Below are positions 17,410-64,000 of a stretch of 64,000 nt of DNA, piece by piece. Below the pieces are notes generated by a model. The model ran no database searches. It was not told where the DNA came from and saw only the letters and a program-made list of their open reading frames with translations. A program made the position numbers and the translations under genes. The DNA is from Podarcis melisellensis (Eukaryota), in the NCBI GenBank assembly GCA_964234715.1, contig OZ174275.1; one strand, given 5' to 3'. Numbering within the stretch: position 1 is the first letter of the stretch; every line of letters begins with the position of its first letter.

Positions 17410-17469
17410 CTAGTAAGGCTCAGATTTCAAATTCCTGTACAAACAGCAAGTGAAGAGCATCCCAAATAT
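17410..17469 (-). CDS. CD151: CD151 terminal coding exon (IFGMLFTCCLYRNLKSEPY*)
   Basis: 60 nt including TAG, acceptor ttgccttctag. Retains the CC palmitoylation site and a YxxL endocytosis motif (YRNL). Confidence 0.96.
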   Translation of the reverse strand: MFGMLFTCCLYRNLKSEPY

Positions 17470-17689
17470 CTAGAAGGCAAAAAAACCAACAATACAAAAC
17501 ATGGGTAAGCAACAGGAGAAGCAATGCATCAAGCCATGTATCTCAGCACCTCTTCACTCTTCTCACATGGAAGAATGTTGGTCCCTTGCAATCATACAGT
17601 TTTGCAGTCAGAAGGGACTGATCTTCCAATATGGGTACAGAGAAAATATGACCTGAAACCTCAGCAGGTGAACCCTGAAGCCTGGGCAA

Positions 17690-17865
17690 GCTCAGTGGTC
17701 TGTAGCTCAGGGACAGCATCTGGCTTTCACACAGAAGGTCCCAGGCTCAGCTTCCAACATTTCCAGGTATAGCTGACCCCTGTCAAAAACCCTGGAAAGC
17801 CACTGCCTCTCAGTTAGCGCTCAATGAACCAAAAGTATGACTTTGTACAAGGTAATTTCCTATGC
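17690..17865 (+). mobile_element. Decayed squamate tRNA-derived SINE (Squam2-like)
   Basis: Reads gtagctcag...agaaggtcccaggctc...ccctggaaagccactgcc. Related minus-strand copies lie at about 26360-26540, 29545-29710, 34000-34140 and 43240-43365. Confidence 0.55.
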
Positions 17866-18285
17866 TCCAGCAGGGCAGCTCAGCTGTAATAGAGATGTGA
17901 TGCTGCAAGCAAGGGCATTCCTTTGGACAGCTGGTAATAGCTGTTTTCTGTAAGAAGTAAAAGGAAAATCTCGCCCTAGTGAGAAAGAGCCAGTCCTGAG
18001 TGAACTGCACTTTACAATGACAGCTGCAAAGGCATGAGAGGAAGGGAGAAATGCACTGGTTCAGCATTAAGATTACATTAAGATCACTGCACATTTCACC
18101 TTTGGCCATTAAAAAAAAAAAAAAGGAAAAGGAAACATTCTCATAATTATTTGAAATGGGAAGCGAAGAGAGAAATTGAGCAATGGATAGTTACTCTGTG
18201 ATTGTCAAAACTCCCAAGATATCAGAGTCACTGTGTGTTATTCTGGTAGTGTTCTGAATTTTAAGAAAAAGAAGTTATTTTCAAA

Positions 18286-18674
18286 CAGGGGTCAGCAAAC
18301 TTACCGCACCTTGGGCCAGTGTCTCCAACGCCGATCATGCGGCAGGCTGGAGGGCAGGGGAGCGCGTGCCCATACACATACGCACACACTATTTCCGGCG
18401 CACTTCCGGGTCGGAGGAGCACCACAAATAGCTTGTGCGCATGTGCACAGGCCTCCTCCGACCCGGATGTGCACCGGAAATAACGCTTGTGCATGCGCAA
18501 ATAAAGCTTGCGCATGCACACAAGCTATTTCCGGTTCTCCTCTGACTTGGAAGTGGGCAGCTGTGCAGCGCAGTGCTGGTAAGAGCAGGCGGTGGCAACG
18601 GGGGTCGCCACAGGCCAGATAAACGAGTCCCTCGGGCCTTATCTGACCCGCGAACCTTAGTTTGGGGACCCCTG
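18286..18674. mobile_element. hAT-type MITE in the last CD151 intron
   Basis: TIRs caggggtcagcaaact / agtttggggacccctg. 8-bp TSD ttttcaaa / ttttaaaa. CpG-rich interior. Confidence 0.8.
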
Positions 18675-19467
18675 TTTTAAAAGCATCCCCTTCTAATTAC
18701 ACTGCTCAGACTGAGCAGCTGTTGGACAAATCACCACTAGAGGCTGCCTTCTCACTGCTTTACAGAAAGATTTCTGTTTTTCACAACCTTCCCTTCAGTA
18801 AATAGTATGTTGGTATTTTTTTTACTGAGTCATGTGTATCTAGAGTTGGCAACCTCAAACCTTTAGAAGCGCCTCCATCCCTTACTCCATAAACTGTAGG
18901 AATTTTTTTTAAGCACACAGGTTATTAAGGATTTACATGTATATGTTTTTGGAAAATTGCCACTTTAAAATGATTGTGGGGGAGACATTCTCTCAATTTC
19001 ACAGTGAAATCAGATAACTCACATCTAAGAAAACACCACCAAAGCTGGCTTCTACTGTAGCTTCTTAGCAGGGAACCCAAGGGGTGGGGAGGGCCACATT
19101 CCATTCAGGGCAACTTTCTGAGGGCCATGTGTCAGGGTCAACGGTTAATATCAGGCATGTAAACAGTCCTTTGTGTGGTTGCTTGTATTGAGTAGGAATT
19201 GTCTCCAGTTAGGGAAGCAATTTGAACGCTAAAAGCAAGCCAACTTTTGAGGCCATGAATGAACCACAAATGGCAAAACAGGTAAGTGCAGGTATGAAGG
19301 CTGGCAGGAAACTTTGTGTGTGTGTGTGGGCTAGTAACTTTTGAGAACTCATTAGCAATGCTAGTTAATATACTGTGCTCAGCCAACACACTGGCTTCAG
19401 AAATTCATGATTGCCACAAATCATGGAGATATAGAAAATTGCAAAAGAAATAGGCATGGGTGAGAAT

Positions 19468-19470
<3 letters not shown>

Positions 19471-19509
<39 letters not shown>

Positions 19510-19549
19510 ATGTGAGATGATACTTGAGTGTGTGTGTGTGTGTGTGTGT
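19471..19549. repeat. (CA)n and (TG)n microsatellites in inverted orientation
   Basis: A CA run at 19471-19505 and a GT run at about 19528-19549, separated by about 22 nt. Confidence 0.95.
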
Positions 19550-20193
19550 CAGAAAAATGAGATCAGAGATGACAGCTACATCTATGACCAGAAGATTGCT
19601 CAAGGCACAGAGATAGTATATAGAATCACTTCCCACATTCACAGCAAACCCAACGAAGCCTCCAGGATCCAGTGGTGCTGGACTGCTGCTTAATTCCAGC
19701 TGCTTTTACATGGTTACAATTTGCACACAGGATCCTCTGGATCCTGCAAAGCTATTATCTCTAATTTACAGGCAATAGCAAAGAGAAATCGATGTCCTTT
19801 TTGCCCTAATGCAGTGTTGTTGGCAACTAGAGTGGGCAACAGGCCAATCCAAAGCCAACCACCGGAGCAATTGGCCAAGTGCTATGCCACACTCCTGCCT
19901 AGCCCCTGCTGGGGAAGTATGCACCTTTCATGATATTCCTGAAACCTTTCTCTTCCGTGGTTGATTACCCATATGTTTTCTGCAGCACTGTTTGTTTGTT
20001 TGTTTGTCTGTCCTATAGCAGCTTTCAGATCAATGGTGAACTGCATGACAGGTCTCCATGGGTCAGACTTTGCTTACAGGTCCCCAGTCGCCAATTACTC
20101 TCCTAACAGTAAACCTGAGACAGGAACTGCAGCATGGTGGTCTCTCAAGCTCTAACCTTGCACACTTCAATCTTGCATATTACTAGCCCATAC

Positions 20194-20280
20194 CTGTACA
20201 AAAGCAATGCCAATCCCCACTGCTCCAATGATTTTCAGGTGTTCCTGGATGAAGTTTTCCAGTTTAGTGATGCAGCCACC
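20194..20280 (-). CDS. CD151: CD151 coding exon 6 ([29 protein letters not shown])
   Basis: 87 nt, found by manual translation. Flanked by ctctctctag and gtatgg. Confidence 0.96.
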
Positions 20281-20834
20281 CTAGAGAGAGAGAAAATTGT
20301 TGACATAATTTCAAGTTTAAATTGTGTCTTCTTGTGCTGTTTCAAGATTTGCCTGGGAACAAAAGTTTTCACACAGCAAATAAATGCAAGAAAATTAAAA
20401 AAGTGGGCTGGGGCATATGAACAAATGCTCATCCTTGCAAGGATTTCTTGGCCTAATGCTTCACTTTAACCATGTTACACCTGTGGCCTGAATAGAGGGC
20501 TCCTATAAAGTCGAATCAGTAGTAGTAGCTTGAATCAGTGGAGCACCAGTAGCCAACTGTAAACCTCTAACATCAACAGGCACTAAAAAAAAAAATATGA
20601 AGTAGAACACAGCGTTAGGGAAGCTCAATCGCTGTCTGCCTCCATCTTTAAAAGATTGCCTTTGGCCTCCTGGTGGCCTGTTTATCTGCCTTGCCAAGTC
20701 ATTGCAGACAGGAGAAATAACAGGATTAGCTGAAGTGTGAGGCAAGCTTTATTTTTTAAGTTGTTTGATCATTCCACAAATGTATTTCCACTGGGTAGTG
20801 GCCTAAGGAAGAAAGCACAGGAGTACATGGCTCA

Positions 20835-20985
20835 TGGCAGTAAAGGCAGAGCTGAGGAGACTCAAATTTAAATCCCCCACGAGCTATGAAGCTCATGGGA
20901 TGGCTTTCAGTCAGTCACCATCCCTCAGCCTTGCCTACCTCATGGGATAGCTCTGGCGAGGATAAAAATGGAAAGGAATATCTAC
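20835..20985 (+). mobile_element. MIR/Ther1-related SINE (Squam3-like), decayed
   Basis: Contains aaatcccc...ctatgaagctca...cctacctca...gaggataaaaatgg. A related copy at about 28882-29041 ends in (aaac)n. Confidence 0.55.
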
Positions 20986-22181
20986 AGAACACACTTATAG
21001 CTACTTTGTACCAATTTCACTTCTATGTCTTCCCCCAAAGAGGTCTAGTTTGGGGAAGATGCTTAAAATCCTTTGTTAAAGGATCTCCTGTCCCTTCCCA
21101 TACAAATATGGTTCTCAGGATTCCCTAAGGAGAGGGGACGAGTGTTTTGAAATGTGTTTAAACTGGTTATGTAAGCTGGTCATTCTTTCTACATTTCCTT
21201 TTGGCAGCCTGTCACAGACAGGTCAATCTCAAAAGGCAGACTGGAGGCAAATGTTGCAGAATGTAAATACTTCACTATTCTTTCCAACTCTTTGGAAATA
21301 TTATTTTATATGTTTCTTTATATCCATGTAAATGGCACTTCTGTGTGATTTACATGAGAGGACAGTTCCCTGCCTCAATAGGCCTACAATGTAGAAACAG
21401 GACAATGTGAGACAAGAGATGAATGAGGAGGAAATGGAGGCCAGGGCAAGCTGGGGAAGGAAATACAAAATGGTGGAATCTCCTTTCAAACGAGTATCTT
21501 TTCTCACCAAAAGTATGTCCTATTGCACTTTGGAAAAGAAGCTCTCGGGGGTGGGCAGCAGGAATCACCTGGGCCCAGCAGTCAGCAATCATGCCCCGAG
21601 GCACAGGGCTTAGTCTGTCTCTGCCTGACTAAAACAAGCTTAGTTGCAGAAGTTATTCATGCTCCTCATATCATTTAATCCCCTTTGAATCCTGTTGAAA
21701 AATGATTGCTTCATTGCCGTCACTCTTTGGCAGAACACTCTGTAGACTGAAACATCAACTGACAGTTGGAAAATTGGAATTCCGTGGTTAAAAAAAACTT
21801 CCCAAGGTATTTTTGAGTTTAAGGGGACAAACTTTTTTAAAAAAAAATACAGTTAAGGTTGCCAAGTCTGAATCTTTGTCCCTTTTCACTAAAAATGGTA
21901 AAAACAACAACCCAAGAACGCCACAAGATGGTGGCAAAGTGTCTCTGCCTCACCTGCCCATGTGTTGGAACAGAACTGCTGAGGAAAATAAATATCTATT
22001 TGCGACTAGTTTTGTGACTACTCTAGAAGAAAATCTTCAGGCAATGTAGCAGAACATACTGAAAGGCTGAATCTGCTGTGGTGCCTTGCATGCAACTTGT
22101 TGATTAAAGTAGTCTCAGAGCCATCTGGCATCCCCTTAACTTTCAGATAAGAGGTGAGGTGGCTCAGGTCTGATTTCTTAC

Positions 22182-22337
22182 CTCTTTGTAGATATTCGAA
22201 GGATGATCTCTTTGGCCACATTTATCTGTCACTGTCTTGCAGCAACTGTCTGGGAACTTCCGGTTTAATGCATCAGGAGATTTGATCCATTCGCTGTCAC
22301 TCCAGTCTGAAGCGTTATGGCTGCCACAGCACTTAAA
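22182..22337 (-). CDS. CD151: CD151 coding exon 5 ([12 protein letters not shown]...PDSCC...[13 protein letters not shown])
   Basis: 156 nt with the CCG and PxSCC tetraspanin motifs, an NAS glycosylation sequon and the QRD integrin-binding motif. AG acceptor and gtaaga donor. Confidence 0.96.
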
Positions 22338-23140
22338 CTGAACACACACAAACATAAAGGTAAAGTTTGCAGGGTGTATTGCCAAAAAGATGTTGCAACA
22401 CTCAAGTTGTCTATGGTGTCATGTCTGTGAATGCCTGTACCTCTGGCCTGCACAACTGCAGGAGCATACAGCCCACCAGTCATACAACAGAAGAGCTATT
22501 GAGCTTTTGCAGAGCTAGAGGGCTGTGCACATTTCTTCCCAAGAGCAACACCAAGCTGGGTTTAGCTGGCATTTCTGTAAGAGAGTATAACTATGACTGC
22601 TGACTGGTTTCTTTTAAAGAAAGCATTCCTTAAATATAAAGCCATCCTTGAACAAAGATAGACATGGTGATGTCACTACTACTTACTATACATATACGGG
22701 ATGTGTGTAAGCTGGCCTATAAACATCGTACTGCTCCTGTGACAGTCAATGAAGAGGCTACTCTGGTTGTTCTCGCTGTATCAAGCTACATTCTCTGCAA
22801 GCAGATCAAATATTCGGCATGGTGTAGAAGAGACATAGCTAGTGAGCTCATTCCTGGCAGACATGCTGTACCCTAACGTGCTTCCTATCCATTACAGTCC
22901 AAGCAAGTCTCCTCCCTTCCTTGCATTTTCCCGTCTTATGTCATGTCTGCAGAGAAACACCCTAGGCATGCAGACAGAAGCTCTGCATGTGTAGGCCTGC
23001 CATACGCCCAAATTTTCCTGGACATTACTGGGATATCAAAGGGGGAAATTTCCTAAAGAAGGCGCTTTGTCCTGGATCTTAGGCAAGTAAAAAAAAATAC
23101 CCCAACAATTTTGGTGGTGTCCTGGTTTTTACTCTTTGAA

Positions 23141-23436
23141 ATATGGCTAACAGATTGAGGTTGAATCCTGACAAGACAGAAGCACTGTTCTTGAGGGGAA
23201 AGGCAGGTGTGGGGGACTCCCTGGCTCTGAATGGGGTAACTGTGCCCCTGAAGGACCAAGTACGCAGCCTGGGAGTCATTTTAGATTCACAGCTGTCCAT
23301 GAAGGCGCAGGTCAATTCTGTGTCCAAGGTAGCTGTTTACCAGCTCAATCTGGTATGCAAGCTGAGACCCCACCTGCCTGTGGACTGTCTCGCCAGAGCA
23401 GTGCATGTTCTGGTTATCTCCCACTTGGACTACTGT
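23141..23436 (+). mobile_element. L2-clade LINE ORF2 fragment
   Basis: Translates as MANRLRLNPDKTE...VRSLGVILDSQLSM...LVISHLDYC, typical of the L2/CR1 post-RT region. Confidence 0.9.
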
Positions 23437-24650
23437 CTAGAATATCAACATTTTAAAAAGCCACATAAGTATAAAAATATTGCTGTGGTAAAGTGGTTTT
23501 ACTAACTAAAAAGTAGGAATAATAAGAACCAATCATTCCCCTGTCACTAGCCAAGGTTTCACCTTCTTTCTGAACTGCAGCAAGTCTCAAATAACTTTCT
23601 GTAACCTTGGAGCTACGCAGCTGAGTGCACTTCCTCTCCTGTATGAATTACAGCCTAAAACAATGAGATGCCTGTCCAAGTTTTCCAAACTAGGTGTGTC
23701 AGACAACACAAGTGCTCCCTGATGGAATGACCTAAAATAGGGCTTCTCTGCTTGATGGAAGATAAAATCTCTGCCTTTTCTCTGTGCTCTGTTGTAAACT
23801 GGATTTCCCATCATACACTTCTGTCACTAGAGATTACTGGCTCCGAGAAAAAGATGTGACAAAGAAGTAGCGGGGGCTTCATCACCTTCCACATTCGGAA
23901 AGGCTGCCACATTTGCTCCAAATGAAGATGTGTCTGCGCTCTCACTTTTCTCTTCAAATGACATGTGAAGGTATAGTGGATTGGTGCTTCGGAGGCACAA
24001 CCACTAAATATGGCCACCTGTTTATTTTAACCAGCTGCACTTGTGTTTCTCTTTTGGGACTTCTTGTGCCAGGAATGAAGCCAAGAGGCAGCAATGTGCT
24101 AATAATACATGTGCCCTGTACAGCACCTCTTGACCAAGGAGGTTAACCAAAGTAGAAGGCATGGGAAAGTGATCTGTACAAAGTAGGAGGCATGGGGGAA
24201 ATTATCTATATTTGGAAAGCCCAGTTAGGGTATCCAAGGGACTGCTCTGTGTGGTCAAGTATTCTGCAAATATTCTGACAAGCTGTATCTCACAAACCCT
24301 AGATCTCTTAGTTCATAGTTATTTATCTCTTGGTTCATAGTTATTTATCATGTCATAAAATACTGCTTAACTGTAAAAAGCAAACAAACCTCAAAGCTGT
24401 TTTCAAAAAGAGAGAGAGAGATAAAACAGTAATTTGATAATATCATGTGCTATTCAAGAAAATAGAAGTCTGGAGCTCCCCCTCTCCAGTTGTGAATCAA
24501 ACAATCCAGATGAGCAGAGGCCTATATATATATATATTTCTATGCAATTAGACTCTCATTTTGCAACGCAGATGGCATTTGCCACAAAAAAGGGAGGTGG
24601 AAAGAAGGCCTGTTGCGCATCAATGTGTGTGCAAGACCTCAATTCACATG

Positions 24651-25052
24651 CAGTAAATAAAGAGTTCACTTGTGATATACCAGTGGTTCAGTGCTTGGAC
24701 ATCAATCAGACGTTTCATCGCTAAAGAGCTTAGTCATCGAGTTTTGTAGTAAATAATATACAAGAGAAGACAGTATGTAAACAACTTAAAGGAGAAGTAT
24801 ATCTGTCCCCATCTGTCCCCATCTGCATGTTTCCATTGGGAGTAGCATAGAAAGAGAACGATGTCAAACCTCCTACAGTTTAGTGACGAAATGTCTGATT
24901 ACCAGAACGATGTCCTAGCACTGAACCACTGGAATATCATAAGTGGACTCTTTATTACTGAGTTTGCAGTTGTTCAAGATAAAATCTATTTTGGAAAGAG
25001 AAGAAATGAGCACTGAACCTCTGATATATTACAAGTGAACTCTTTATTTACT
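24651..25052. repeat. Inverted repeat with one left arm and two right arms
   Basis: Left arm 24651-24725, reverse-complement arms at 24879-24960 and 25009-25052. Confidence 0.85.
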
Positions 25053-25264
25053 CCGTTTGCAATTGTTTAAAATAAAACCTATTTGGGAAAGAAACTACTT
25101 TTGGCATTTTTATGGATGTTTGTTACAGATAGATGCCTTGTATCAATTGTTGTGCATTTTAGGCAAGTGGAGAAATCATTCCACATATTTGGTGGAATAC
25201 TTCCTTCCATAGTCGAAAGATATAGAATCTTATCACCCTATTTAAATCCATTTCCTAAGCCTAC

Positions 25265-25369
25265 CTCCTGCTGCAGTTTGTCCACCGCACTAGTCACAGA
25301 CACTTCGTCCGGCTTCATGTACTTCTGGGTCATTGTCTCCTTCAGATTTTGCTTCAGCTCCGTATTCAG
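25265..25369 (-). CDS. CD151: CD151 coding exon 4 ([35 protein letters not shown])
   Basis: 105 nt, AG/GT flanks, large extracellular loop helices A/B. Confidence 0.96.
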
Positions 25370-28300
25370 CTGCACAGGGTGGGGGAAAGGTAGTGGGGAT
25401 GGAAAGAAAATATGAATAACATCCTTCTTCAACATAGCTCTCTGTATGATAACCAACACAAAACTGCACCCAGAATGACTCAATAGATCCCTGGTCCAAT
25501 TTTACAAGATAAATAAATTTGGGAAACAAAGGCGAGATGGAGAGTTGCAGAATGTTAGGCAAGTGGGTTGCTCAAGAGCAGAGATAGGAAGCCTGTGGCT
25601 CACCAGATGTAGCAGGACTAGAACTCACAACTTCCTAGCCACTGGCCAGGTAGGCCAGGACTAATGGAAGGCCACATCTCTGCTCTAGAGAATCCGCAAG
25701 CTCTAAATAAACACAGGCAGATGCAACAAGCCTTTCTTCCCTTTTGCCTAGGTAGATCAGAATCTGGTGGTGAGATCTGAGTGATCTGCAAGAATTCTGA
25801 CTCCCAATCCTTTAACAATAGGAATGACACACTCCCCTCCTCCCCTCTAAACTAGGCTGCTGAGATGAAGAAAGCTGCAGGAGGGGAACCAGAAGTTGAT
25901 TTGTGTCCAACTGGACTGTGAGTTAGTTCTGCTACTGAAAACAATCCCCCAGTTGAAAGTGTTCCAACAACGTTCTACCAGAATCACACTGCCACTATTT
26001 TGCTCCAGTTGGTGGACCTTGGGTGTCTTCTAAAAAGCCAAATACACGTCCCACAATCCTGAAGTCTGGCCGCTTCTAGCCTAAGCTTATTTTCTAACAT
26101 TTTCTGTAAAATAAACAGGCATCCCACTTCACTTGAATTCTAGCTTGTTATATGGCCCTGGGGCTCCACTGGCTTGGGCCCAAGCACCTGGGCTTGACTA
26201 GATTCATGGGTCAGGCTATCAGCAACCCAAGTACTTTTGAAAGTAGAGCTCTGCAGCTGTCACCATGAGCTACATTTTCTCTCATGCATGCACTTCACCA
26301 CTGGTGAATGAGATGGAAAGTTCCATCAAACTCTTACTACAATGTACACAGAAACAACAAAGCTGCCTTATACTATAAACTCGTCTAGCTAACTACCTGC
26401 CAACCCTGATTGGCTACATATCTGTAGGATCTTGAGCAGAGATCTCTCTCAGCCCAACCCACGGAGATCTTTTAACTGCAAATGTCAGGAACTCAGCCCA
26501 GAGACCTTTCAGCATCTAAAGAAAATGCTCTACCACAGAAGCACTTGGGGAGAGGAGCGGATGCCCCAGGAAACAAAGCAAGGGTTTTTGCATCAAAATA
26601 CGGCAGTGATACATCCTTAAATTCCACTTGTACAAGGTAAACATATCAAAGGAGTGACTAGAGCATCATTTGTTTGCCAGACTAGTGCTTTGATTTGAAC
26701 CCAAATGATATGAGGCTTTAGAGATGAATAATTCACACAAATACAAGGGGGAAAGGTTTGCTGGCACCAAAAGCAAAATGAGAGAGAGAGAGACTCAATT
26801 AGCAGATGCCTTCCAGGAAAAACAAAATAAATTACCTGTGGGCTCATAGGAAAGAACTGCAGCGTGGAACAAAGGCAGCAAAAGCAAATACACAGAGTTT
26901 TATAAGCATATTGGGGGAAAGGGAAGCAAGGAGGGGAAAATAAGAGGAAGAATCACAAAAGACAAAGTGCATTCAGTCCTAGATATAAGGGGAAAGGAGG
27001 CTTGCATGGAAGGTGTGGCAGACAGAAGAAACAGAGGCTTGCAAAACAAGTAGGATCCACACAAACACTGGTGTCCCTCCCCAAACTACAAATCCCAGCA
27101 TGCCACGCTCACTTGCTTGCATTATCAAACTCAATACCATGCATTCCTGAAACAGCATTTTAAATTAGCTCATCCTTCCTGGGAAGCTGATTGGATAATC
27201 ATGCTAAGAGCTAATGATTCCTCAGACAGCTTTTGAAAAAGAAAGCGTCCTCTCTTTGAAAAAACGTTTGGCCTGTTCTGTGCTGGATGATTTCTGTCCA
27301 TATGAAGTTGTGATTGCTTAGGAATTATTCAAGGCAGTCTATTAAACAATTTCCATGCAAACCTGGATATAGGAGTTAGCTTCATTTTACCTTACCCATT
27401 AAATAAATAAGATGCAACAAAATCCCTGCAAGGGTGTCTTCTCAAAGGCTATGGGGTGGGGGGACATACAATAAAAAACCCCATCTAGAACAGTCATCCC
27501 CCCTCACTTGGTGCCCTCCAGATGTTTTGGACTACAACTTCCATCCTTGATAACCTCTGGCTACGCTGGCTGGGGCTGACTGGAGCTGTAGTTCAGCAAG
27601 ATCTGGAGAGCGCCAGGTTGGGAACGGCTGATCTATGCAAAGCTTATGAACGCATGTGGTGTAGCCCAGGAGATCAAGCTTTGTCGAAATGCACACATCT
27701 GTTTTATAAAAGGATATGTGTGAAGACCTGAGTTACGGTGTTCTGTCACACACCTATCTTCCCATTGCCTTTAGGCCACCAGATCTGTATACTTGTAGCT
27801 GAATGCTGACATCAGAATCGTTTAAACAAAATATGGATGATCCTGAGGAAGTTGGTGCATGTAGACCTCTTATTTTCCCCACTGAGCTTTTCTGAGTTTA
27901 GTCACACTTATTTATACAATAGGAAGGTGCTACAGTAACAAGAGCTTTTTGCTAGTAAGTGGGGGGGGGGGGAATCTTCAGCACAAGCAATCAGACTGTT
28001 AGTCCATTTCATACTACAGTAATGTGACAAGGGAAAAGAGAAAGAGGCAATGCAAAGGGAAATTTGTATTCCAAGCACAGGTGCAGCAGCTAGCCAGATG
28101 CTTTGTTAGAGGGTATTTTCACACATCAAGACACTTTTTCTGGATCAACTCAATGCTGATCTATTTCATGCAGTATTAAATTGGCAAACTCATACACAAT
28201 TCATAGGCAAATACCATTTCGGGTGGCAGTGGTAGTTTTTTTAATTTTTTTAAAAAAATCAAACTGATATAAATCACTGGGTGATATCGTACAGAGACAT

Positions 28301-29169
28301 ACTCAGAGTAGACCCACGAAATGGTTTTTTTTACACATAGAATTATTTTTGTTGACAATGTTTTTCACTGTGAAATGGCTTCAACATATTTTATGGGAAG
28401 TGATTCATAAATGGAGTCAAATAAATAAATACATTGCTGCACCACAAAACTGGCTCTGCTTGGGCCAATGTTGTAAACAAATGCATGCAAATAAGATTTG
28501 AAATGAAAGTAAGTTTTTTTTATACATCAGAGGAAGGTACCGGGAGAGAAAAAAGGTAGGACAAGATGGGCTCATAACACACCTTTAAACTGAACTCTCA
28601 GTAGTCACACAATACGAGCCTGCTATTCTAGGACACTTAAATATCTCTTGTACACCCACCCTCACCCCATCAGTTCAGGGTATCAGTTTATTGGCCACAG
28701 CGGCATCACTCATCTCTGCAACAGACATGTTCATAGGGAACTGAAGAGCCTCTGCCAGCAGCAGGCTTCTTTCACCTGTGATGTTGCCACCGATGTCACT
28801 ATAGGGCTGGCTGGGATTGGACATGGGAGTATGAAGGGAAACCACAGCAGAATGACAGGTGGGGCTGTGCAGAGCGAAAGGAGAACCAGTGTGACATAGC
28901 GATGAAGAGTTCAGGTCCCCGCTCAGCCATGAAGCTCACTGGGTTGTAGTGAGGATAAAATGGGGAGAACTTTGTACACCCCCTTGAAGGAGAAGGTGGT
29001 ATATAAGTGTAACAAACAAACAAACAAACAAACAAACAAACATGTGCATGCTTTTTTTATGACAAACACCAGGACACTTGTGAGAAGTGAAAGGCAATGG
29101 TGTGAGAACCCTGGAAAATACAGCCTGTCAAACTGAGGGGCTCTTTGCTAGTTATTAGTGGCTGCTTAC

Positions 29170-29244
29170 CTGCTGGTAGTAGATATAGGCCAGGATTCCA
29201 GCAATTACCTCAAGCAGGAAGATGCACAGCAGCAATATAAAATA
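29170..29244 (-). CDS. CD151: CD151 coding exon 3 (YFILLLCIFLLEVIAGILAYIYYQQ, TM3)
   Basis: 75 nt, flanked by ttttttgcag and gtaagc. Near-identical to human YFILLLIIFLLEIIAGILAYAYYQQ. Confidence 0.96.
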
Positions 29245-32200
29245 CTGCAAAAAACCAAAATGACATGTTAGAATAGACCAGAGCATAATGTCACCACCAG
29301 TGAAAGGTTCCCTATGTAAATCTTTGAGGAAATGCTCAAAGCTAACAAATCGATTCCACTTCCTCCCCAAGAAACATAGACTGGCAAAACAAGCAGAGGT
29401 GGGTGCCAATGCTTGAAAGCCCAGAGAATGGGCAGCACGGAATGGGGAAAGTAACTTGCTGGGATCCAGTGGCACAGCTAGAGATGACATGTTGAGTTCA
29501 GTAGATTCAGCAACAAAAACCAGTGTAGTTAACACATGAAGCTGCGTTTCGCTGACTCAAGTCCACCCAGCCTAGCATGGTCTACTCAGATATGCAATGG
29601 ATCTCCACAGCCGTCTTTCGTAGTCCTGCTACCTGCAATGCTTTTAACTGGAAATACCAGGGATTGAGCCTCAAATATTCCTGCATGCAAAGCACGAGTG
29701 ACTGAGCCTTGGTTCATCCCTGGGCGGTTTTCACAGCTGTGGTTCCTACTTCTCTCCTGCCAATGCCACTTGTCTTGAAATGCAAGCCCTCCAAAGCGAC
29801 ATCATTAGGAGCTCATCACAAGCTTGTTAGGGGGCAGTGGAATGCTTCCTTGGTGAGGGCAGGGAGGGTTTCAGAATAGCTGGGCTTCTTGCAGGGAGGG
29901 CTCTCCCATGTGGGCAAGAGTCAGCAACATGCCTGCAGCAGCACAGGGGCAGCTTCCGGAACTTTGGACTGAACCGTCAAAGAATACAACCAGGCACAGG
30001 GTGCAACACAGAAGAGTTTCCCTGCCCAAATTGCTCAGAGACCCCTAAAGCGGACCTTTCTGCTGACAACCAACCCAGAACTTGAGCAAGGCTTGGATCG
30101 TTCAGAACTCATGACACATTACATCACTAAGCTTATGACAGCCTGAGCTGTACATGTACCGTCAGCAACAGAATTAGAATTGATATAATGGGAGAAATCT
30201 GAAATCTGCTTGGAAACTCTTTGTATACAAGTATCTGCCACCGCCATTATGGTACTTAGCCACACACAATTACTGATGTGTTTTTTGGTATTGCAGTTTT
30301 AGTGACACGGGTGCTACACACACCACAACCTATTCCACTGGCTATAATACACTGCTTTTTACAAGCCCATTTCAGCAGCCAGCAGGATCCCTGCAAGTCC
30401 CAGGGGAGACTTCTGCAGCACCATGCAGGCAAACCCTAACTTAGGACACCCAAAGACCATCCTGCAAATCCCCTGCCATTGGAATTAAGGCGGGTAGTGA
30501 CTAGGCAAGGATCTTCTCAGTTGTGGTGCCCTATCTCACAGAGTGTTTCCAACCGTTGGAAAACCTATGAAGTTCTATGCTGCTCTTGAAAAGTTTAAAG
30601 ACCAGCATGTGTGTGTTTTTATGCTCCTTAATAACTGCCTTTCAATCTTTCATCTGAGGGATTTAATTTTCTTATTTACTTCCTTTGCTAGCTGCCCTGG
30701 AAATACACACTAGTGAAGGTCATAGCATAAATGTTATTTAACTGAACAGTAAAAGTTAGAAGGGTTTCTCTGCCAGGCAGTCTCCAGTCTGTGAGCACAC
30801 CACATCAGCCATTCACTCACCCCACAAAGTGTTGCTGAAGCCTCAGACCAACTGCATGCTTGGACAAGGTATCCCTTTCATACCATGAGAATGAGTAACC
30901 TAGCAGCGCTCTGGCTAACCAAAATGGGAGACTGAAATTGAACAGAAACACACCTTAACCCAAGGGACCGCTTTCTTGCTTTCTTTTTGGAGACAAGTTA
31001 GTCAGAGCTACTGACATCATCCCTTTGTCCAGCTTGTACATTAAGGAAAGAGGAAACAATCAACTAAGGAGCTGGAAAGTTGTAATTTCCAGTGCTTGTG
31101 TTCTAACATTGTCCTCTTTGAAAGTACACTCCTCCTCCCACAACCACACCACTGAGGAGATATATCTATATGTATATTTCTTCAATGGCAGAACGATCAG
31201 GGCTGATAGAAAAGTCCAGATTTAAAACAGCACAGCTATAAGACATCTAATATATATAGAAGCACATTTCTTCTTTAAGAAGTGAGGTTGGAGCAGGAGG
31301 ACAGAATCCATCAGAGTTCCTATTAGTCAAAGAGAGCTGCCTTTGGGGCAGGGAGGGGATGATACTCCACAACTGGGAAGGAAGATCAGTTAAATATCCT
31401 ATGTGAATCATCTACTGGAGTACCTCCAAAATAAAGTTTTATGGAAGTCATATGATCTGAGTTGGAGGGGTGGGGGAGGAGAGAGAAAGACCCCACACTT
31501 TCTAATTCAGTGGGCCATCTACATACAATCATCATTATAAAGGAATATCTTCTAGCTTTCAATCATTATGGCTATAAAATAACACAACTGACACATCACT
31601 TCTCAAACTTTCATTCATCATGATGATCCACAAAGACTATTCTTACATATGACATTCTGTACTGAGCATCAAGATTACGACATTGAAAGAAACTGGGGTT
31701 ACCTGGTGCAAAGTGGCCCTCTAGACCTGTGAAAATATGCTTGGGGTATGGCAGCCCTTGCCAATCTGGTGCCTTCCTCCAGCTGGGTTGGACTACAGCT
31801 CCCATGGTGGTGGCTGGGGCTGATGGGAGTTGTAGTCCAACACAGCTGGAGGGAAGGCACCAGGCTGATGAAGGCTGGGATATGGGCTTAAGCTCAGGAT
31901 TGGCAGAAGCCTTTGAGCCAACTCTGCCTGGCTGGCCACAAAGTGTTTGTTGTGCATGCTGCTTAACTAAACCGGAGGCCAAGAGACAGGCGACAATAGA
32001 TCTGTCACAACCAGCCACTCAGGGGAGGGGAGAATGGCAACAAAAGGCTCTTTTGTTCCCAAGAGACAATCATTAGTTTTCTGTGGCAAAACAACAAAAA
32101 AGGACTGTACCAAATTTTTCATCTGTAATTGCTGGCTTGGAAAGACAGAAACAAAAAGGGAGAAGTCTTCCGCACACTGGGCCATTGTGTGCCTGCCAAG

Positions 32201-32532
32201 AGGGATTGGTATGGTCTACAGGCCATGTCAGCTCCAGTATCATCACAAGCCATGAGAAATACCACTTCAGAAATATCATAGCGCTTTCTTTGTCCTTACT
32301 GTGTGGTGTCCCTGCGAAAGAGGCCTCCGCCTCACACCTTCCTTTTTCACGGCTGCACTGGCAGAGAACGCGTCCATTTCCCAGCCCCACCAACACATTT
32401 AGTTGGAGCAAGCCTACTTTTCACATTATACTCTGACACACTTTCTGCAACACAGCTATTCCTATTGATGTCAGAAAGAGGAGCATATGAAGGATCTCAC
32501 AGGAACACAGGAAGATGCCTTACACAAGTCTA

Positions 32533-32672
32533 GCCATGCCTCTGAACACTAGTTGCTGGAAACTGCAGGTGGGCAGAATGCTCTTGAGCTTAGGTCCCGC
32601 TTGTGGGCTTCCCAGAGGCATCTGGCTGGGATGCTGGGCTCGATGGGCCACTGGCCTGATCCAACAGGGGTT
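32533..32672 (+). mobile_element. CR1 3'UTR fragment inserted in a minus-strand SINE remnant
   Basis: Reads atgcctctgaacactagttgctgg...ttcccagaggcatctggctgg...gcctgatccaacagg. It splits the SINE motif ggaagatgccttac...tggtccatctagttcagtattg. Confidence 0.55.
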
Positions 32673-32874
32673 ATATTCACTGGTCCATCTAGTTCAGTAT
32701 TGCAGACACTGATTGGCAGTAGCTTCCCAAGGCCGGAATTAGTGGTGGGTCTCCCCACCCAAACATTTCTCTCTTTCTGTCTTAACCCCTACTTCCCTGT
32801 TACAATTTAGCGTGGCTCTCCGTGTCGATCCCTGCCTACACTGAGGTCTTCCCACTTGCTCAAAGAATACTCAC

Positions 32875-33066
32875 CACTCTCAGGAGGCTCCGCTGCTCCC
32901 TGAATGTAGCACAGCAGCCCAAGATGCCGGTGATCATGACCACAACGCCTGCCACCACCAGGATGTAGGCTGTTGCCATGTACGTATTGGACTGCAGGAG
33001 GCTTATGTAATCGCTCTTTTCAGCCAGGGTCCAGATGCCCACTGCCATCACGGCTCCACCTGCCAG
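32875..33066 (-). CDS. CD151: CD151 coding exon 2 ([24 protein letters not shown]...[15 protein letters not shown])
   Basis: 192 nt, phase 0, AG/GT flanks. KSDYISLL and TAYILVVAG favour CD151 over TSPAN11. Confidence 0.96.
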
Positions 33067-33692
33067 CTTAAGAGAGAAAGGAAGATAATGAGTTAAATGC
33101 AGCTGGGGTAGAGAAAACATGAGGCACCATTATCTAGCAGAACCACCTATTGCCTCATCAATGGTGGTTCACCATGGTCTGATTCAGGGTCCCTTGGCAG
33201 AGGGGCTCCTGCTGATCTCAATGAGGATCTAAGTTCAAGTGAAGCACCTTTTCACTCTTATCCTTGCCTATCACACTGCTTTGAAGATTTCTAATGGTCA
33301 CTTTTGACGGAAGTTATGGGAAGAGTAGAATAAAGAAAGGCCTATCTATGTGTAGAGGGCCTCCAGCCTTCCTGGAACTTACCTCTTCAGAAGGCAATCT
33401 GGGGATAACCCAGTGGAATGCTCCCCTATGGCTATGCCATCAACACCCATCTTCAGAAAGCTATCAGGGAGAAGTTCTAACCTAGCACTCACCTCAATGT
33501 GGCTGTGCTTTTTGTGGAATAAAGGAGCAGCTAGAAGCTAAGCTCCAACTATCTGCTAATTTTGGAGCAGACTGGCTGTTCTCTTTAAATCATGCAGAAG
33601 AGCATAAAAAGTCATCCTAATCGCCCCACTGCTCCAGGATACTCCCAAATTCACAGTACAAATCAGCAAAATTGCTAAAGCTGGCTCCTTAC

Positions 33693-33776
33693 CCAGAAAA
33701 AGAAGTTGAAGATGAAGAGGAGATATTTGAGACAGATGGTCCCACATGTTTCCTTGTTTTCAGAGTAGTCACGCAT
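33693..33776 (-). CDS. CD151: CD151 tetraspanin, coding exon 1 (MRDYSENKETCGTICLKYLLFIFNFFFW)
   Basis: Manual translation, 84 nt with ATG at 33776-33774 and GT donor at 33692-33691. Matches the CD151 N-terminus (human [28 protein letters not shown]), including the two palmitoylated Cys. An acceptor (ttttccacag) at 33796-33795 implies 18 nt of 5'UTR in this exon. Confidence 0.95.
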
Positions 33777-35199
33777 TGTCGCAATTTAGCAGGGCTGTGG
33801 AAAAGCTTCAAGAAAAGGGAAGATTTCTGTTAGAAAACCCTTTCCCCCTTTGACACTCAATAAGCAACTGTCAACCAGCTTTCTTCTGTATTCAACCACC
33901 ACTCTTAAGAGGCATTGCCAAGATGTAACTTAAGAAACACATAAGGGGGAAAACATGGCTGGTAATACTGCAAGCCCACCCTGTCAGTTCCAGGACAGGT
34001 CAATGGAAGCTGCTTTGTACCCAGTCAGACCATTGGTCCATCTGTTGTCTACACTGACCAGAAGTGAGTCTCCAGGGAATGACCCTGGAGGAACCTTCTG
34101 CATGCAAAACAGATGCTTTACCACTCAGCTACAGACCTTTCCCTACTATTACCGCTGGAGTTAAGATCACTATGTGCCAGGGCACATCTCCACCAATCTA
34201 TGGCCCCCTGGTGATGCTAGCAGGTATGTGGTCATATAGCCAAACGTCTTCTTCAAGGTAGACTAGGTTCAGGCTATCCAAAATTTCATAAGCCAGAAAT
34301 GGGGAAACCTGTTGTCTTCCTGATGTTGTTGGACTACAACTCCCCTCAACCCTGACAACTGGCCATGTTGGCCGGGGCTGATGGGAGTCCAGAGACATCC
34401 AGAGAGCCACAGGCCCCCCCATCCCTGTTATAAGCTTTCACTAGCACCTTGGATTGTGCTGGAAAACCACAAAAACCCAGAGCACAGGCATATGAAAAAT
34501 CATCTTGCTCAGGTTCCCCTAATGACGTGGAGCTAGAAACAGCAGCCCACTCCTGGATTTCATGTGCAGTTAAGTGTTTGGTGCAGAGAAGTTTTCCCTT
34601 TTTTCCTCTCTCACATGATTCAGAAGCTATGTCACCTCCTCAGAAACTGGTACATGGCACTGGGGGCAGGAGGAGATTCCCAGAATGGGAATATTTCCAT
34701 GTCTGAGCCATCTCAGTCTGTCCCCTTTACCTAATTATGCAAGGAAAGTTTTATTCTTTTTCTCTTAGGATATGTGACAGCATAGCTGGCAGCAAGCAGG
34801 GTTCACAAGCAAAGGGGAGAGGCTGAGAGATGACAGCATACATCCAAGATAGTAAAAGGGAGAGAACAACAAGGCTCCTTCCTTGGCTTCCTGACAGCCC
34901 AGTCTTCATGAGAAATTACCGCACAGCTCTGCCAAAACATAAAAAGGAGCTTCAGAGGCATCCATTGGTCCTCAAAAATCCCACTCTCATCCACTGCTCC
35001 CCCCACCCCACCCGCTTGGGATATACTGCTTGTATAAGATGAGAGATTTACTGTCCCCAGGACAAAAAACAAATCCTTTTGTTTATCTATAGATAGAACA
35101 GATTATATCAACAATTGAAACAGACATACGTGCTACAAAAATAAACTGGCTTTGCTGTCATGATCCGCCCCCCCCAAAAAAAACACAGGATCCTAGAAA

Positions 35200-60781: not shown

Positions 60782-61039
60782 CTGTATTTTTCGCTCTATA
60801 AGACGCACCGGACTACAAGACGCACCTAGTTTTTGGAGGAGGAAAACAAGAAAAAAAAATTCTGAATCTCAGAAGCCAGAATAGCAAGAGGGATCGCTGC
60901 GCAGTGAAAGCAGCAATTCCTCTTGCTGTTCTGGCTTCTGGGATAGCTGTGCAGCCTGCATTCGCTCCATAAGACGCACACACATTTCCCCTTACTTTTT
61001 AGAAGGGGAAAAGTGAGTCTTACAGAGCAAAAAATACGG
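60782..61039. mobile_element. Tc1/mariner-type MITE with internal hairpin
   Basis: TIRs ctgtatttttcgctctataagac / gtcttacagagcaaaaaatacgg with TA flanks. Internal stem cagaagccagaa...ttctggcttctg. Confidence 0.85.
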
Positions 61040-61229
61040 TAAATAAATGAGAAAAATGTAGGGTGGAAGTTGAACAGCAGTGAGATGCAAACCACAGTGA
61101 TAATTACAGCTTAAATACAACAGGCACACACAGCGGAATGGTGATAATTACTGAGGTGATTGTATTAGCACATGTAGCAGGGCAGGAAACCATTCACAAT
61201 AAGCAGGTATCTTATTAGTAAGCACCCAC

Positions 61230-61512
61230 AGGAGGTAGTGATGGCTACCAATTTGGATGGCTTTAAAAAAGAATTTGGCAAATTCATAGAGAACAAGGCT
61301 ATCAATGGCAACTAGCCATGATGGCTAGGTTCTACCTCCACGGTCAGAGGCATTATGCCACTGCATACCAGTTGCTGGAATCCCATGTGGGCAGAATGCT
61401 GTTGTGCTCATGCCCCGCCTGGATGCTTTCCACGGGGGTTTGTCTAGTTGGTCACTGTGAGAACAGCATGCCTCACCAGACCTGATCCAGAAGGCTCTTC
61501 TCATGTTCCTGA
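61230..61512 (+). mobile_element. CR1 3' end fragment
   Basis: Reads gtgatggctaccaatttggatggctttaaaaaagaatttggcaaattcatagag...ctatcaatggc, followed by CR1 3'UTR. Confidence 0.8.
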
Positions 61513-61681
61513 GCTCATGACTTACCATCATCTCCAGAGGTAGTCCTGCAATGCAGGAGGGAACTGCTTCAGGCAGAACCAGGAAGAGAAGGGAAGATGA
61601 AGGCAAGGAATTGATGCTTTTGGTGCAGTGAGACTATAGCAGAAAGCTGGTACCACTCCACTCCAGTTAACTCATTATCAC

Positions 61682-61687
61682 TTTATT
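61682..61687 (-). terminator. Candidate polyadenylation signal (AATAAA) for the Rab-domain gene
   Basis: About 360 nt after the stop codon. Another AATAAA lies at 62012-62017. Confidence 0.4.
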
Positions 61688-62043
61688 GTTGCACGACTCC
61701 ATTGCAATAACTTACACTTGCATAAATCACATTGTTTCTGAGTGTAGTCTTGAGACCCTGTGAAGTAGCTTGGATGGTTTTATAGGTAAGCCAATAATGC
61801 TGGATCTATGAGCTGTGATTTGAAGCACTTCCCTGAAGCATTGCGGAAAAAGCAGGAGCGATTTGCAGTTGCAAAAGATGTCATGTCACTTTGATACAGC
61901 ACTCTTTTCTTTCTTTCTTTTTAAAAAAGATCTTGACTCTTCCTTCAGTTCAATCACATTTATCCCTATCTTCTTGCAGGGAGGCAGCCAACTCTGTGCT
62001 TTAGGCTGTTCTTTATTTTCTAACATATCCCTGAACGATTCTG

Positions 62044-62128
62044 TTACAAACAGCATCCCTTCCTCTTGTTGTACTCCTCCAGGTGCAATGCCTGCTCTCT
62101 CTGCTTGTCCTCCTGTGCTGTCAGGATT
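62044..62128 (-). CDS. CRACR2B: Terminal exon of the same Rab-domain gene (ILTAQEDKQREQALHLEEYNKRKGCCL*)
   Basis: 85 nt (1 nt + 28 codons), phase-compatible with the 63633-63709 exon, acceptor gtgttgcag. Ends in a basic patch plus the CCx Rab geranylgeranylation motif and TAA. Confidence 0.8.
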
Positions 62129-63632
62129 CTGCAACACACACAAAATAGGAGGTCAGCACAGAAGGGAAGGAGTAAAGTAAGAGACAGGCAAATCTTGGCA
62201 CTAATCTCAAATTGAGGGGGGAAGGAGCATACATTATCTCAGCATGAAAGGATGAGTACTCTAGCATCACACTGATAATCCAAAAAGCCAGACTAAGCTC
62301 ACTGCTCTTTCAGAGACTTCCAGTGTACCTTAAAGCATCCAAGCCAATCCAAGCCAATCCAAATTCAAATCAAAGTGCATCTTTTGCAACTTATTTGGGA
62401 GCAATTCCTCCTGAACTTAATGGGCAATTCCTCCTGAACACTTCAGAGTGTGCATGTATTTGTTTGGACTGACAATCATCTTGAATTCAAGTATTCTCAA
62501 ACTGGCTTATGAGTTAATATGTGATATCTGCTGAGAGAAACGGACCTTTCTGGGGAATCTGCAAGTTAACCCAACAGGCAGAGCTGGCTCAGCCAGTAGA
62601 CAGGGTGAGGGTGCTACCTCAGGCAGCAGAAGCCCCCTGAGGCAACACCCCCCCCCATGTACCCTGTCTGCCCTGCCGCCTCTGCCAGCAGTGGAGAAGT
62701 GCTTCCGCCATCAGTGTCGATTTCAGACAAGTTTGAGTCCATTTCTGGCAAGATCTTGCCTGAAAACACGCAAGATCTTGTAGAGTATATAAGATCTCAC
62801 ACGATTTTCGGTGAGATCTCACTGAATCAGCACCAGTGGTGCTGCTGCTTCTCCACTAGTGCCAGATGTGGTAATGTATGCAGTGGCAGCAGAGTGGGCT
62901 GTGCAGGCAATGGCAGCAGCAGCTGGTATCATAGTGGCAGTGGGAGTAGGAGTGGCAGCAGCGGCAGGGGAAGGCAGCACTTCCAACAGGACAGATTTCC
63001 AGCATAGATCTGCTCCTGTCAGGAACTCCCAAGACAAAAACAAGAGACAGAACCTTAGCAAAGAATTAAGAACTTATGTAATCATTACATTGGCCATAGA
63101 TCTCCCCCACAAACCTTCCATTCCCCAAACACTAAAATGAAGTGCTAACATTCTGCCTGGTGAGATTGTGGTGGTGAAGCTCTATGGCAGGAGTTGTTAA
63201 CCTGAAGGCCTCTAGATGTTACTGGACCCCCAGCTCCCATTGTTCCTGACCATTGGCCATGCTGGCTGGGGCTGATGGGATCCAACAGCATCTTGAGAGC
63301 CACATGTTCCCCAGCCCTGCTGTATGGTATCTGAGCATCTTGCAGTCTTTAGTATATAATCCTATGGAGTATCCACCCTGTGATAAATGGAGTTTAACTA
63401 ACATTTGCAGTGTGGCAGTGCTCAAAGAACACCAGGCAACTGCAAAACACAGAGGAAGAAATTATCTCCACCCACTGGACTCTTACTGTTTAACTGGAAC
63501 CAACACACTGCTATGTTTTGTCATCTGTTGCTGTTTAACCAGGACCAAGCCTAGCAACTTTGCTGCAACTGGATGAGGAACTGAAGTGGCTTCTGCTCCT
63601 TTTCCAGTTTTATGGGAACTGTTTGCACAGAC

Positions 63633-63709
63633 CTTGCCATGTGCAGCATGGGCTCCTGAATGTTATAGCCAGTCCTTGCACTGCACTCATAGAAAACAGC
63701 TTTATATTC
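63633..63709 (-). CDS. CRACR2B: Penultimate exon of a Rab-domain gene, probably CRACR2B/EFCAB4A (EYKAVFYECSARTGYNIQEPMLHMA-R)
   Basis: 77 nt with acceptor ctttttgcag and GT donor at 63632-63631, ending in phase 2. Contains the small-GTPase G5 box (ECSA) and resembles the CRACR2A/Rab46 C-terminus. The symbol rests on synteny with CD151. Confidence 0.8.
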
Positions 63710-63774
63710 CTGCAAAAAGAGGGAAAGAAGGCAGAAAGTAACTTCAATCAACAATTGTCAGAGTCTGCCACTGG

Positions 63775-63790
63775 AATAATAATAATAATA

Positions 63791-63853
<63 letters not shown>

Positions 63854-63960
63854 TTATTATTTATACCCCGCCCATCTGGCTGGGCCTCCCCAGCCACTCT
63901 GGGCGGCTTCCATAAAAACCAAAAATACAGTAAAATCACACGTTAAAAACTTCCCTGAAC
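63775..63960 (-). mobile_element. L2-clade LINE 3' end with expanded (AAT)n microsatellite tail
   Basis: (aat)n at 63775-63853, followed by ttataccccgcccatctggctggg...ccactctgggcggcttcc. Same family as 45399-45738. Confidence 0.85.
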
Positions 63961-64000
63961 ATTCCCTGAATAACATTTTCCCCCTTTCTTGCTATACCCA

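Follow-up and report, generated by a model that had tools for sequence, protein, structure and literature searches.

CRACR2A-L (Rab46), the long product of EFCAB4B, is a large Rab built, in order, from an EF-hand pair, a helical/coiled-coil region, a linker, a Rab GTPase domain and a C-terminal CC motif. The long form is established by experiment (PMC4300414). Rab46 is prenylated, binds Ca2+ via its second EF-hand and binds dynein-dynactin, and the same gene also yields a short isoform without the Rab domain (PMC8303950). A 2021 review of large Rabs recognizes only Rab44, Rab45/RASEF and Rab46 and CRACR2B never occurs in it, and a 2012 Rab phylogeny mentions Rab44 and Rab45 as the only large Rabs. 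The 64,000-nucleotide stretch of the Podarcis melisellensis genome analyzed here (contig OZ174275.1; the window) carries near its upper end two exons, exon A (63709-63633) and exon B (62128-62044), which lie on the minus strand like all gene features described below. In the lizard orthologue of CRACR2B (EFCAB4A) they are very probably the two final coding exons of the long isoform, and the rest of the gene lies beyond position 64000. The window thus points to an under-recognized, uncharacterized vertebrate large-Rab paralogue, a fourth. The original prediction knew of no functional characterization of this gene, and in agreement the searchable literature holds no paper that pairs CRACR2B with a Rab domain or with dynein; the combination of EFCAB4A and GTPase returned nothing relevant.

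Exon A is the penultimate coding exon and spans 77 nt. Its acceptor side has a polypyrimidine tract and an AG at 63711-63710, and its donor GT lies at 63632-63631. It translates as EYKAVFYECSARTGYNIQEPMLHMA followed by two leftover bases, AG (a phase 2 end), and encodes the end of the Rab domain with the ECSAR G5 box and the first part of helix 5. The last intron (62129..63632) is 1504 nt long, runs from GT to AG and ends with the acceptor AG at 62130-62129. The first base of exon B closes an AGA codon for Arg, after which exon B reads ILTAQEDKQREQALHLEEYNKRKGCCL and terminates with a stop codon at 62046-62044. Exon B supplies the remainder of helix 5, the hypervariable region and a CCL prenylation-type tail; the last residues before the stop are GCCL, a double-cysteine motif of the prenylation type. 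The G5 box of exon A, which follows the pattern E[TC]SA[KR], sits at the distance from the C terminus expected for the Rab family. The available transcript data are Logan contigs from four small runs of one related organism, and the RNA nature of these runs is the tool's guess. In runs X4 and X5, one contig each connects 62123 with 63633 across five substituted letters. These five letters are the related organism's version of 62124-62128, and therefore the join is 62128|63633 and the stretch removed is exactly the predicted 1504-nt GT..AG intron. The two phase-compatible GT-AG exons of the original prediction are thus verified in their borders and phases, their splice is seen in a relative's contigs, and together they encode the G5 box, helix 5, hypervariable region and CCx tail that had been read from them.

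Exons A and B were searched separately, and the identities of the joined tail to database protein tails were counted locally; these counts agree with the per-exon tblastn results. Exon A alone aligns with positions 134-156 of the 162 in Pfam Ras with an E value of 0.08, scoring 12.9 bits against a cutoff of 21.6, a shortfall to be expected of a 25-aa query. Its matches in the Protein Data Bank (PDB) are almost exclusively small GTPases, aligned at the G5 box, among them RASEF (2p5s, residues 169-192) and Rab6. The 27-aa tail peptide of exon B alone has no match in Pfam or PDB. A word search with the open reading frame (ORF) around exon A returned mostly unspliced bird genomic ORFs and one spliced fragment (P0011), which is 97 aa long, matches Pfam Ras and was used as a longer query for an exhaustive search. 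The outstanding match was P0012 (E 4.7e-38), followed by a long series of large Rabs. P0012 is XP_062973172.1, the 702-aa EF-hand calcium-binding domain-containing protein 4A of the lizard Elgaria, and contains EF-hand_7 at residues 45-101, EFCAB4A_helical (PF27574) and a complete Ras domain at residues 516-676 (164 bits).

The same protein is annotated in close relatives of P. melisellensis. The lacertid EFCAB4A cluster includes Podarcis muralis (696 aa), Podarcis raffonei (701 aa) and Lacerta agilis (696 aa) together with short or split models from Zootoca and Podarcis lilfordi. When lacertid EFCAB4A proteins were compared with the whole window by tblastn, they matched at exons A and B only, as anticipated from the claim that the 5′ part of the gene lies outside it. 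The P. raffonei protein (P0283) is 96.3% identical over 27 aa at exon A (aa 648-674; E 2.8e-12) and 93.1% identical over 29 aa at exon B (aa 673-701; E 1.3e-11). A second lacertid protein (P0163, aa 643-696) is 96% identical at exon A (aa 643-669), and the range for exon B across the two proteins is 87-93%. At the DNA level, window positions 63777-61040 and 60781-51693 are colinear with the P. raffonei EFCAB4A locus (L007) at 95.6% and 94.2% identity. Exons A and B fall on the last two annotated exons of that gene, exon A corresponding to L007 35221-35301, and the 3′ untranslated stretch downstream of the stop codon is colinear as well. In P. raffonei ~0.7-0.85 kb separates the exon with the G4 motif from the start of exon A downstream, and from this spacing the G4 exon of P. 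melisellensis is expected a few hundred bases past the end of the window. It had been suspected that the gene might already be auto-annotated, and the 701-aa RefSeq model of P. raffonei EFCAB4A does include both exons.

The nearest full-length proteins are the RefSeq EFCAB4A (= CRACR2B) entries of lacertids and other lizards, which are 694-730 aa long and end in GCCL. The order of parts in the lizard orthologues is an EF-hand pair, the EFCAB4A_helical region, a linker, a complete Ras/Rab domain and a CCX end. The GTPase motifs of P0163 and P0283 consist of the P-loop GNSGVGKS, TIGVDY, WDTAGQE with the catalytic Gln, RFQSIT and GNKMD, and a pattern search located G1, G3 and G4 motifs in nearly all listed EFCAB4A/CRACR2B-type models with PF00071. 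A PDB search with the GTPase part of P0163 gave 60 best matches that are all of the Rab/Ypt/Sec4 type, led by RASEF (2p5s, E 2.4e-50). Reptile and bird EFCAB4A proteins conserve the C-terminal motif GCC[LMT], in place of which sharks have CCK.

The conservation of this C terminus bears on the proposal that the Rab exons of P. melisellensis are decaying pseudo-exons and that the short isoform alone is functional. The window shows no more than two of the exons and mammals appear to have lost the module, which would fit such decay. However, exons A and B are intact with canonical splice sites, they are spliced in the relative's contigs, and the same 53 C-terminal residues are strongly conserved across reptiles, birds and sharks. 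The exon protein identity to P. raffonei (93-96%) is about the same as the identity of the surrounding noncoding DNA (94-96%) and cannot by itself show constraint at this distance. Taken with the deeper conservation, decay of the Rab exons is very improbable, and intact terminal exons of a long CRACR2B isoform are preferred.

A word search with P0012 delineated the spread of the long form. Among the matches listed, more than 90 of the 120 EFCAB4A/CRACR2B-type models carry PF00071, with lengths of ~650-800 aa. The squamates listed with this form are Pogona, Tiliqua, Podarcis, Hemicordylus, Phrynocephalus, Anolis carolinensis (694 aa) and Paroedura. The other sauropsids listed are many turtles, both alligators and dozens of birds including Gallus, and the fishes listed are sharks, rays, lungfish, coelacanth, gar, bowfin, paddlefish, bichir and eels. 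Shark proteins stand at 57-61% identity within the word-search lists. No mammalian or amphibian long form occurs among the 120 best matches of either word search, which are ranked lists only, and the absence of mammals from these lists is consistent with a loss of the Rab exons in mammals. The Rab-bearing long form is the usual, already auto-annotated state outside mammals. The idea that this lizard keeps a full-length CRACR2B is supported by orthologue models with EF-hand, helical and Rab parts, but the trait is not peculiar to the animal.

Squamates, turtles and birds also have listed short isoforms, 405-470 aa long, that lack a Ras domain, and two of these (P0260 and P0274) come from Logan transcript contigs. 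Because isoforms without the Rab domain are annotated in reptiles and birds too, what was "lost in the human lineage" would be the exons of the long isoform. The short and long forms diverge directly after the residues DERDAFEAKKL. The short isoforms (P0281, P0285, P0260 and P0274) end in a conserved Cys-rich tail with the elements VSLRKK, CCCC(C)HH and GGH, in this order, which could be an acylation or metal-binding motif. The Rab part is variously named in the databases: "EFCAB4B-like," "RAB44 protein, partial" (B10K birds, P0304-P0330) and "si:ch211-247i17.1" (Lates, P0373). Lungfish and some shark orthologues carry the name "EFCAB4B-like."

The position of CRACR2B among the large Rabs was determined from a maximum-likelihood tree of 42 Rab domains in which invertebrate EF-hand Rabs served as the outgroup and true RASEF was left out. 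The CRACR2A-type and RAB44 domains form one clade (100/97 support). The sauropsid EFCAB4A domains form a separate clade (99/94) that lies outside CRACR2A+RAB44 and joins lungfish and coelacanth (90/81) and then sharks (88/66). All EFCAB4A-named rows together, long-branched teleosts included, are only weakly supported as monophyletic (53/88). Approximately unbiased (AU) tests rejected both trees in which the sauropsid sequences were forced into another clade, with p 0.008 for CRACR2A and p 0.0003 for RAB44. The Rab-domain lineage of CRACR2B is distinct from those of CRACR2A and RAB44. The tree that had been proposed as a check on the gene's origin accordingly excludes CRACR2A and RAB44 as sources, and RASEF was not among its 42 domains.

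These data dispose of the suggestion that the two exons derive from a translocated or duplicated copy of CRACR2A or RAB44 that came to lie beside CD151. Some sources do name relatives "EFCAB4B-like" or "RAB44 partial," as this explanation would have it. The sauropsid domains nevertheless fall outside the CRACR2A+RAB44 clade, both forced joins are rejected, and separate EFCAB4A and EFCAB4B proteins exist in Corvus and in the shark Heptranchias. The chance that such a copy gave rise to exons A and B is negligible, and descent from CRACR2B itself is retained. In Heptranchias both EFCAB4A (695 aa) and EFCAB4B (724 aa) have Rab domains, which makes the Rab module ancestral to the CRACR2B lineage. 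With EF-hand Rabs of invertebrates as the outgroup and the long form present from sharks to birds, sequence comparison supports the view that the module of CRACR2B looks ancestral, as the original prediction had assumed.

Comparison with the described systems places CRACR2B closest in design to CRACR2A-L. Both proteins have the same parts in the same order, lacertid CRACR2B is colinear with bird CRACR2A-L over the full length at 40% identity, and each gene has a short form without the Rab domain. CRACR2A-L differs in that it belongs to a separate paralogue lineage and to another chromosomal neighborhood, whereas CRACR2B adjoins a CD151-like tetraspanin gene. The EF-hand region of CRACR2B is closely similar to those of CRACR2A and the invertebrate proteins, but CRACR2A has Asp at position 1 of the second EF-hand loop, in contrast to Glu in sauropsid CRACR2B. 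Mammalian CRACR2B (EFCAB4A, ~399 aa) shares the name, the N terminus with EF-hand and EFCAB4A_helical parts and, by the human gene order, a position upstream of CD151. It is described only as a short form without the Rab domain, unlike the reptile, bird and fish gene with its ~8 extra exons that encode the linker, Rab domain and prenylation tail. RAB44 also combines EF-hand, coiled coil and Rab domain in a large Rab. In the tree it is the sister group of CRACR2A and forms a clade distinct from CRACR2B, and its proteins are often much longer, at 800-2000+ aa. RASEF (Rab45) is likewise a large Rab, and its Rab domain is the closest solved structure. No RASEF orthologue was recognized among the ten matches that were cluster-checked out of the 150 best library matches, and tree entries labeled "ras and EF-hand..." group with CRACR2A, CRACR2B or the invertebrates. 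The EF-hand Rabs of invertebrates (such as C. elegans 4R79.2 and the "EFCAB4B-like" proteins of Saccoglossus and Mytilus) combine EF-hand and Rab in one gene and have a near-identical EF-hand region; they differ as pre-duplication relatives.

Several observations weigh against a functional, full-length CRACR2B Rab in P. melisellensis. The window holds only 53 codons of the gene, and all upstream parts are known from orthologues and not from this genome. Every full-length protein is a computed gene model. The Pfam scores of the EF-hand lie at the cutoff (29.7 against 30). In a comparison of P0163, P0012, P0166, P0171 and P0208 with P0230, P0234 and P0263, every sauropsid CRACR2B protein has Glu at position 1 of the second EF-hand loop (EQDNNG or EQNNNG), and the residue is Asp in CRACR2B of shark, lungfish, gar and teleosts, in CRACR2A, in RAB44 and in the invertebrate relatives. 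The substitution of Glu for Asp may change the Ca2+ affinity of this loop. Annotation of the gene is split in two lacertids, with a 405-aa EFCAB4A (P0281) and a 231-aa "EFCAB4B-like" Rab (P0297) in Zootoca and with models of 455 and 110 aa (P0280 and P0282) in P. lilfordi. Run X1 also carries the last intron unspliced, which indicates that unspliced RNA or DNA is also in the data, and the runs are only guessed to be RNA. A search with residues 340-600 of P0163 found no transcript contig that spans the helical and Rab regions, and the joining of EF-hand and Rab exons in one transcript, which had been named as a check on the gene model, was thus not encountered in the transcript contigs.

The transcript contigs from other species cover parts of the Rab module. 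In an RNA contig of another species (L003, 917 nt; the source of P0011), the G4 exon (GNKID), the G5 exon and a DCCL tail are spliced together. The bird RNA contig L005 has the linker and G1-G4 spliced, with ~2.1 kb of unmatched sequence upstream in place of the helical exons, and the bird contig L001 has the G1, G2, G3 and G4 motifs on separate exons. Positions 1-560 of L003 (SRR12656981) consist of intron sequence, the G2/G3 exon and then the G4 exon directly in another frame; the exon for RFRSIT...NW is missing from this contig, which could be the result of exon skipping, partly processed RNA or misassembly.

The split models and the transcript data together outline a different gene structure, in which the Rab exons are a separate unit, a stand-alone small Rab beside a short CRACR2B, and the long models are annotation fusions. 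The Zootoca and P. lilfordi pairs, a further model from Euleptes (P0298) and many bird entries named "RAB44 protein, partial" agree with this structure. So do the short isoforms found in transcript contigs and the Rab-only isoform of C. elegans 4R79.2 (PMC8303950). Yet independent pipelines arrive at the joined gene in dozens of species ranging from sharks to birds, and the joined protein is colinear from end to end with CRACR2A-L, a long form known from experiment (PMC4300414). The split Rab models begin inside the linker exon and have no N terminus of their own, the invertebrate relatives hold EF-hand and Rab in one protein, and a Rab-only isoform could coexist with the long form without contradiction. 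A stand-alone Rab is therefore unlikely, and it keeps a small probability because no contig with both helical and Rab exons was found. A single gene that encodes EF-hand, helical and Rab parts accounts better for the locus.

By analogy with related lizards, the rest of the P. melisellensis gene beyond position 64000 would comprise ~15 exons over ~25-40 kb. The predicted long isoform of ~700 aa would start with the EF-hand pair and continue with a long helical/coiled-coil region, a ~130-aa linker, a complete Rab GTPase and the CCX end. The two C-terminal cysteines would be geranylgeranylated and the protein would cycle between GTP and GDP on membranes. Judged by Rab46, CRACR2B-L would most likely act as a membrane Rab that is switched by GTP and carries two geranylgeranyl groups. 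Its EF-hand pair and coiled coil might link vesicles to dynein-dynactin in the manner of CRACR2A-L (Rab46), possibly under Ca2+ tuning. The short isoform of the same gene would correspond to the only form known in mammals. On balance it is fairly probable that non-mammalian jawed vertebrates keep CRACR2B-L as a fourth functional large Rab that has never been characterized, a prenylated and EF-hand-bearing protein with its own membrane compartment and possibly a dynein adaptor, and that it was lost in mammals and perhaps amphibians, leaving the short isoform.

If long CRACR2B is a working Rab, vertebrates have four large Rabs and not three, and the list of Rab44, Rab45 and Rab46 is a mammal-centered undercount. 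Mammalian CRACR2B would then be the truncated survivor of a Rab gene and not a stand-alone EF-hand protein. CRACR2B-L would be beyond study in mouse or human cells but open to it in chicken, zebrafish-like fishes and lizards. The inconsistent annotation, with its split models and names such as "RAB44 partial" and "EFCAB4B-like," could be corrected. For the window itself, the locus is an ordinary gene end that RefSeq has already modeled in close relatives.

The downstream neighbor of CRACR2B is a CD151-like tetraspanin gene (17413..33785) located by motif scan and Pfam on the same strand, 28 kb downstream of the CRACR2B stop codon. The motif scan placed tetraspanin coding exons at 33785-33678 (the first), 22418-22167 (with the CCG-containing loop), 20280-20170 and 17469-17413. 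The gene looks complete, starting with MRDYSENKETCGTICLKYLLF and ending with CCLYRNLKSEPY. Pfam Tetraspanin matches two of the exons (E 1.2e-6 and 1e-3), and the PDB matches of the exons are CD63 and TSPAN15. Searches of PDB and the ESM Atlas identified the tetraspanin family only and did not name CD151. The gene is tentatively taken as CD151 from its resemblance to the human CD151 sequence, with the human order CRACR2B-CD151 on the same strand as background. Motifs of POLR2L were absent from both strands of the window, and at the Elgaria, Falco and P. raffonei loci the next called gene lay outside the 10-kb flanks. The placement of the locus at the CRACR2B position by CD151 is thus borne out as far as a same-strand tetraspanin gene downstream and colinearity with P. 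raffonei EFCAB4A are concerned, with the identity as CD151 a tentative one.

The remaining features of the locus are untranslated and intronic. The 3′ untranslated region (61180..62043) is at least ~860 nt long; contigs from runs X1, X4 and X5 extend from exon B to 61187/61180, and they halt at a high-copy repeat. The 3′ part of the intron that precedes exon A occupies 63710..64000, in which tblastn detected no further EFCAB4A exon, and contains a long (ATT)n microsatellite at ~63765-63865 just 5′ of exon A. The window contains no runs of N. High-copy repeats, in which the contig depth jumps from tens to thousands, are located at 60600-61200, at 63201-63400 inside the last intron and at 63801-64000. 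Many contig loose ends cluster at 61041, 63245 and 63280 in repeat stretches. A 260-bp stretch at 60781-61040 is present in the window only and has no counterpart in the P. raffonei locus, so this insertion in the 3′ flank or untranslated region is probably a young SINE-like element.

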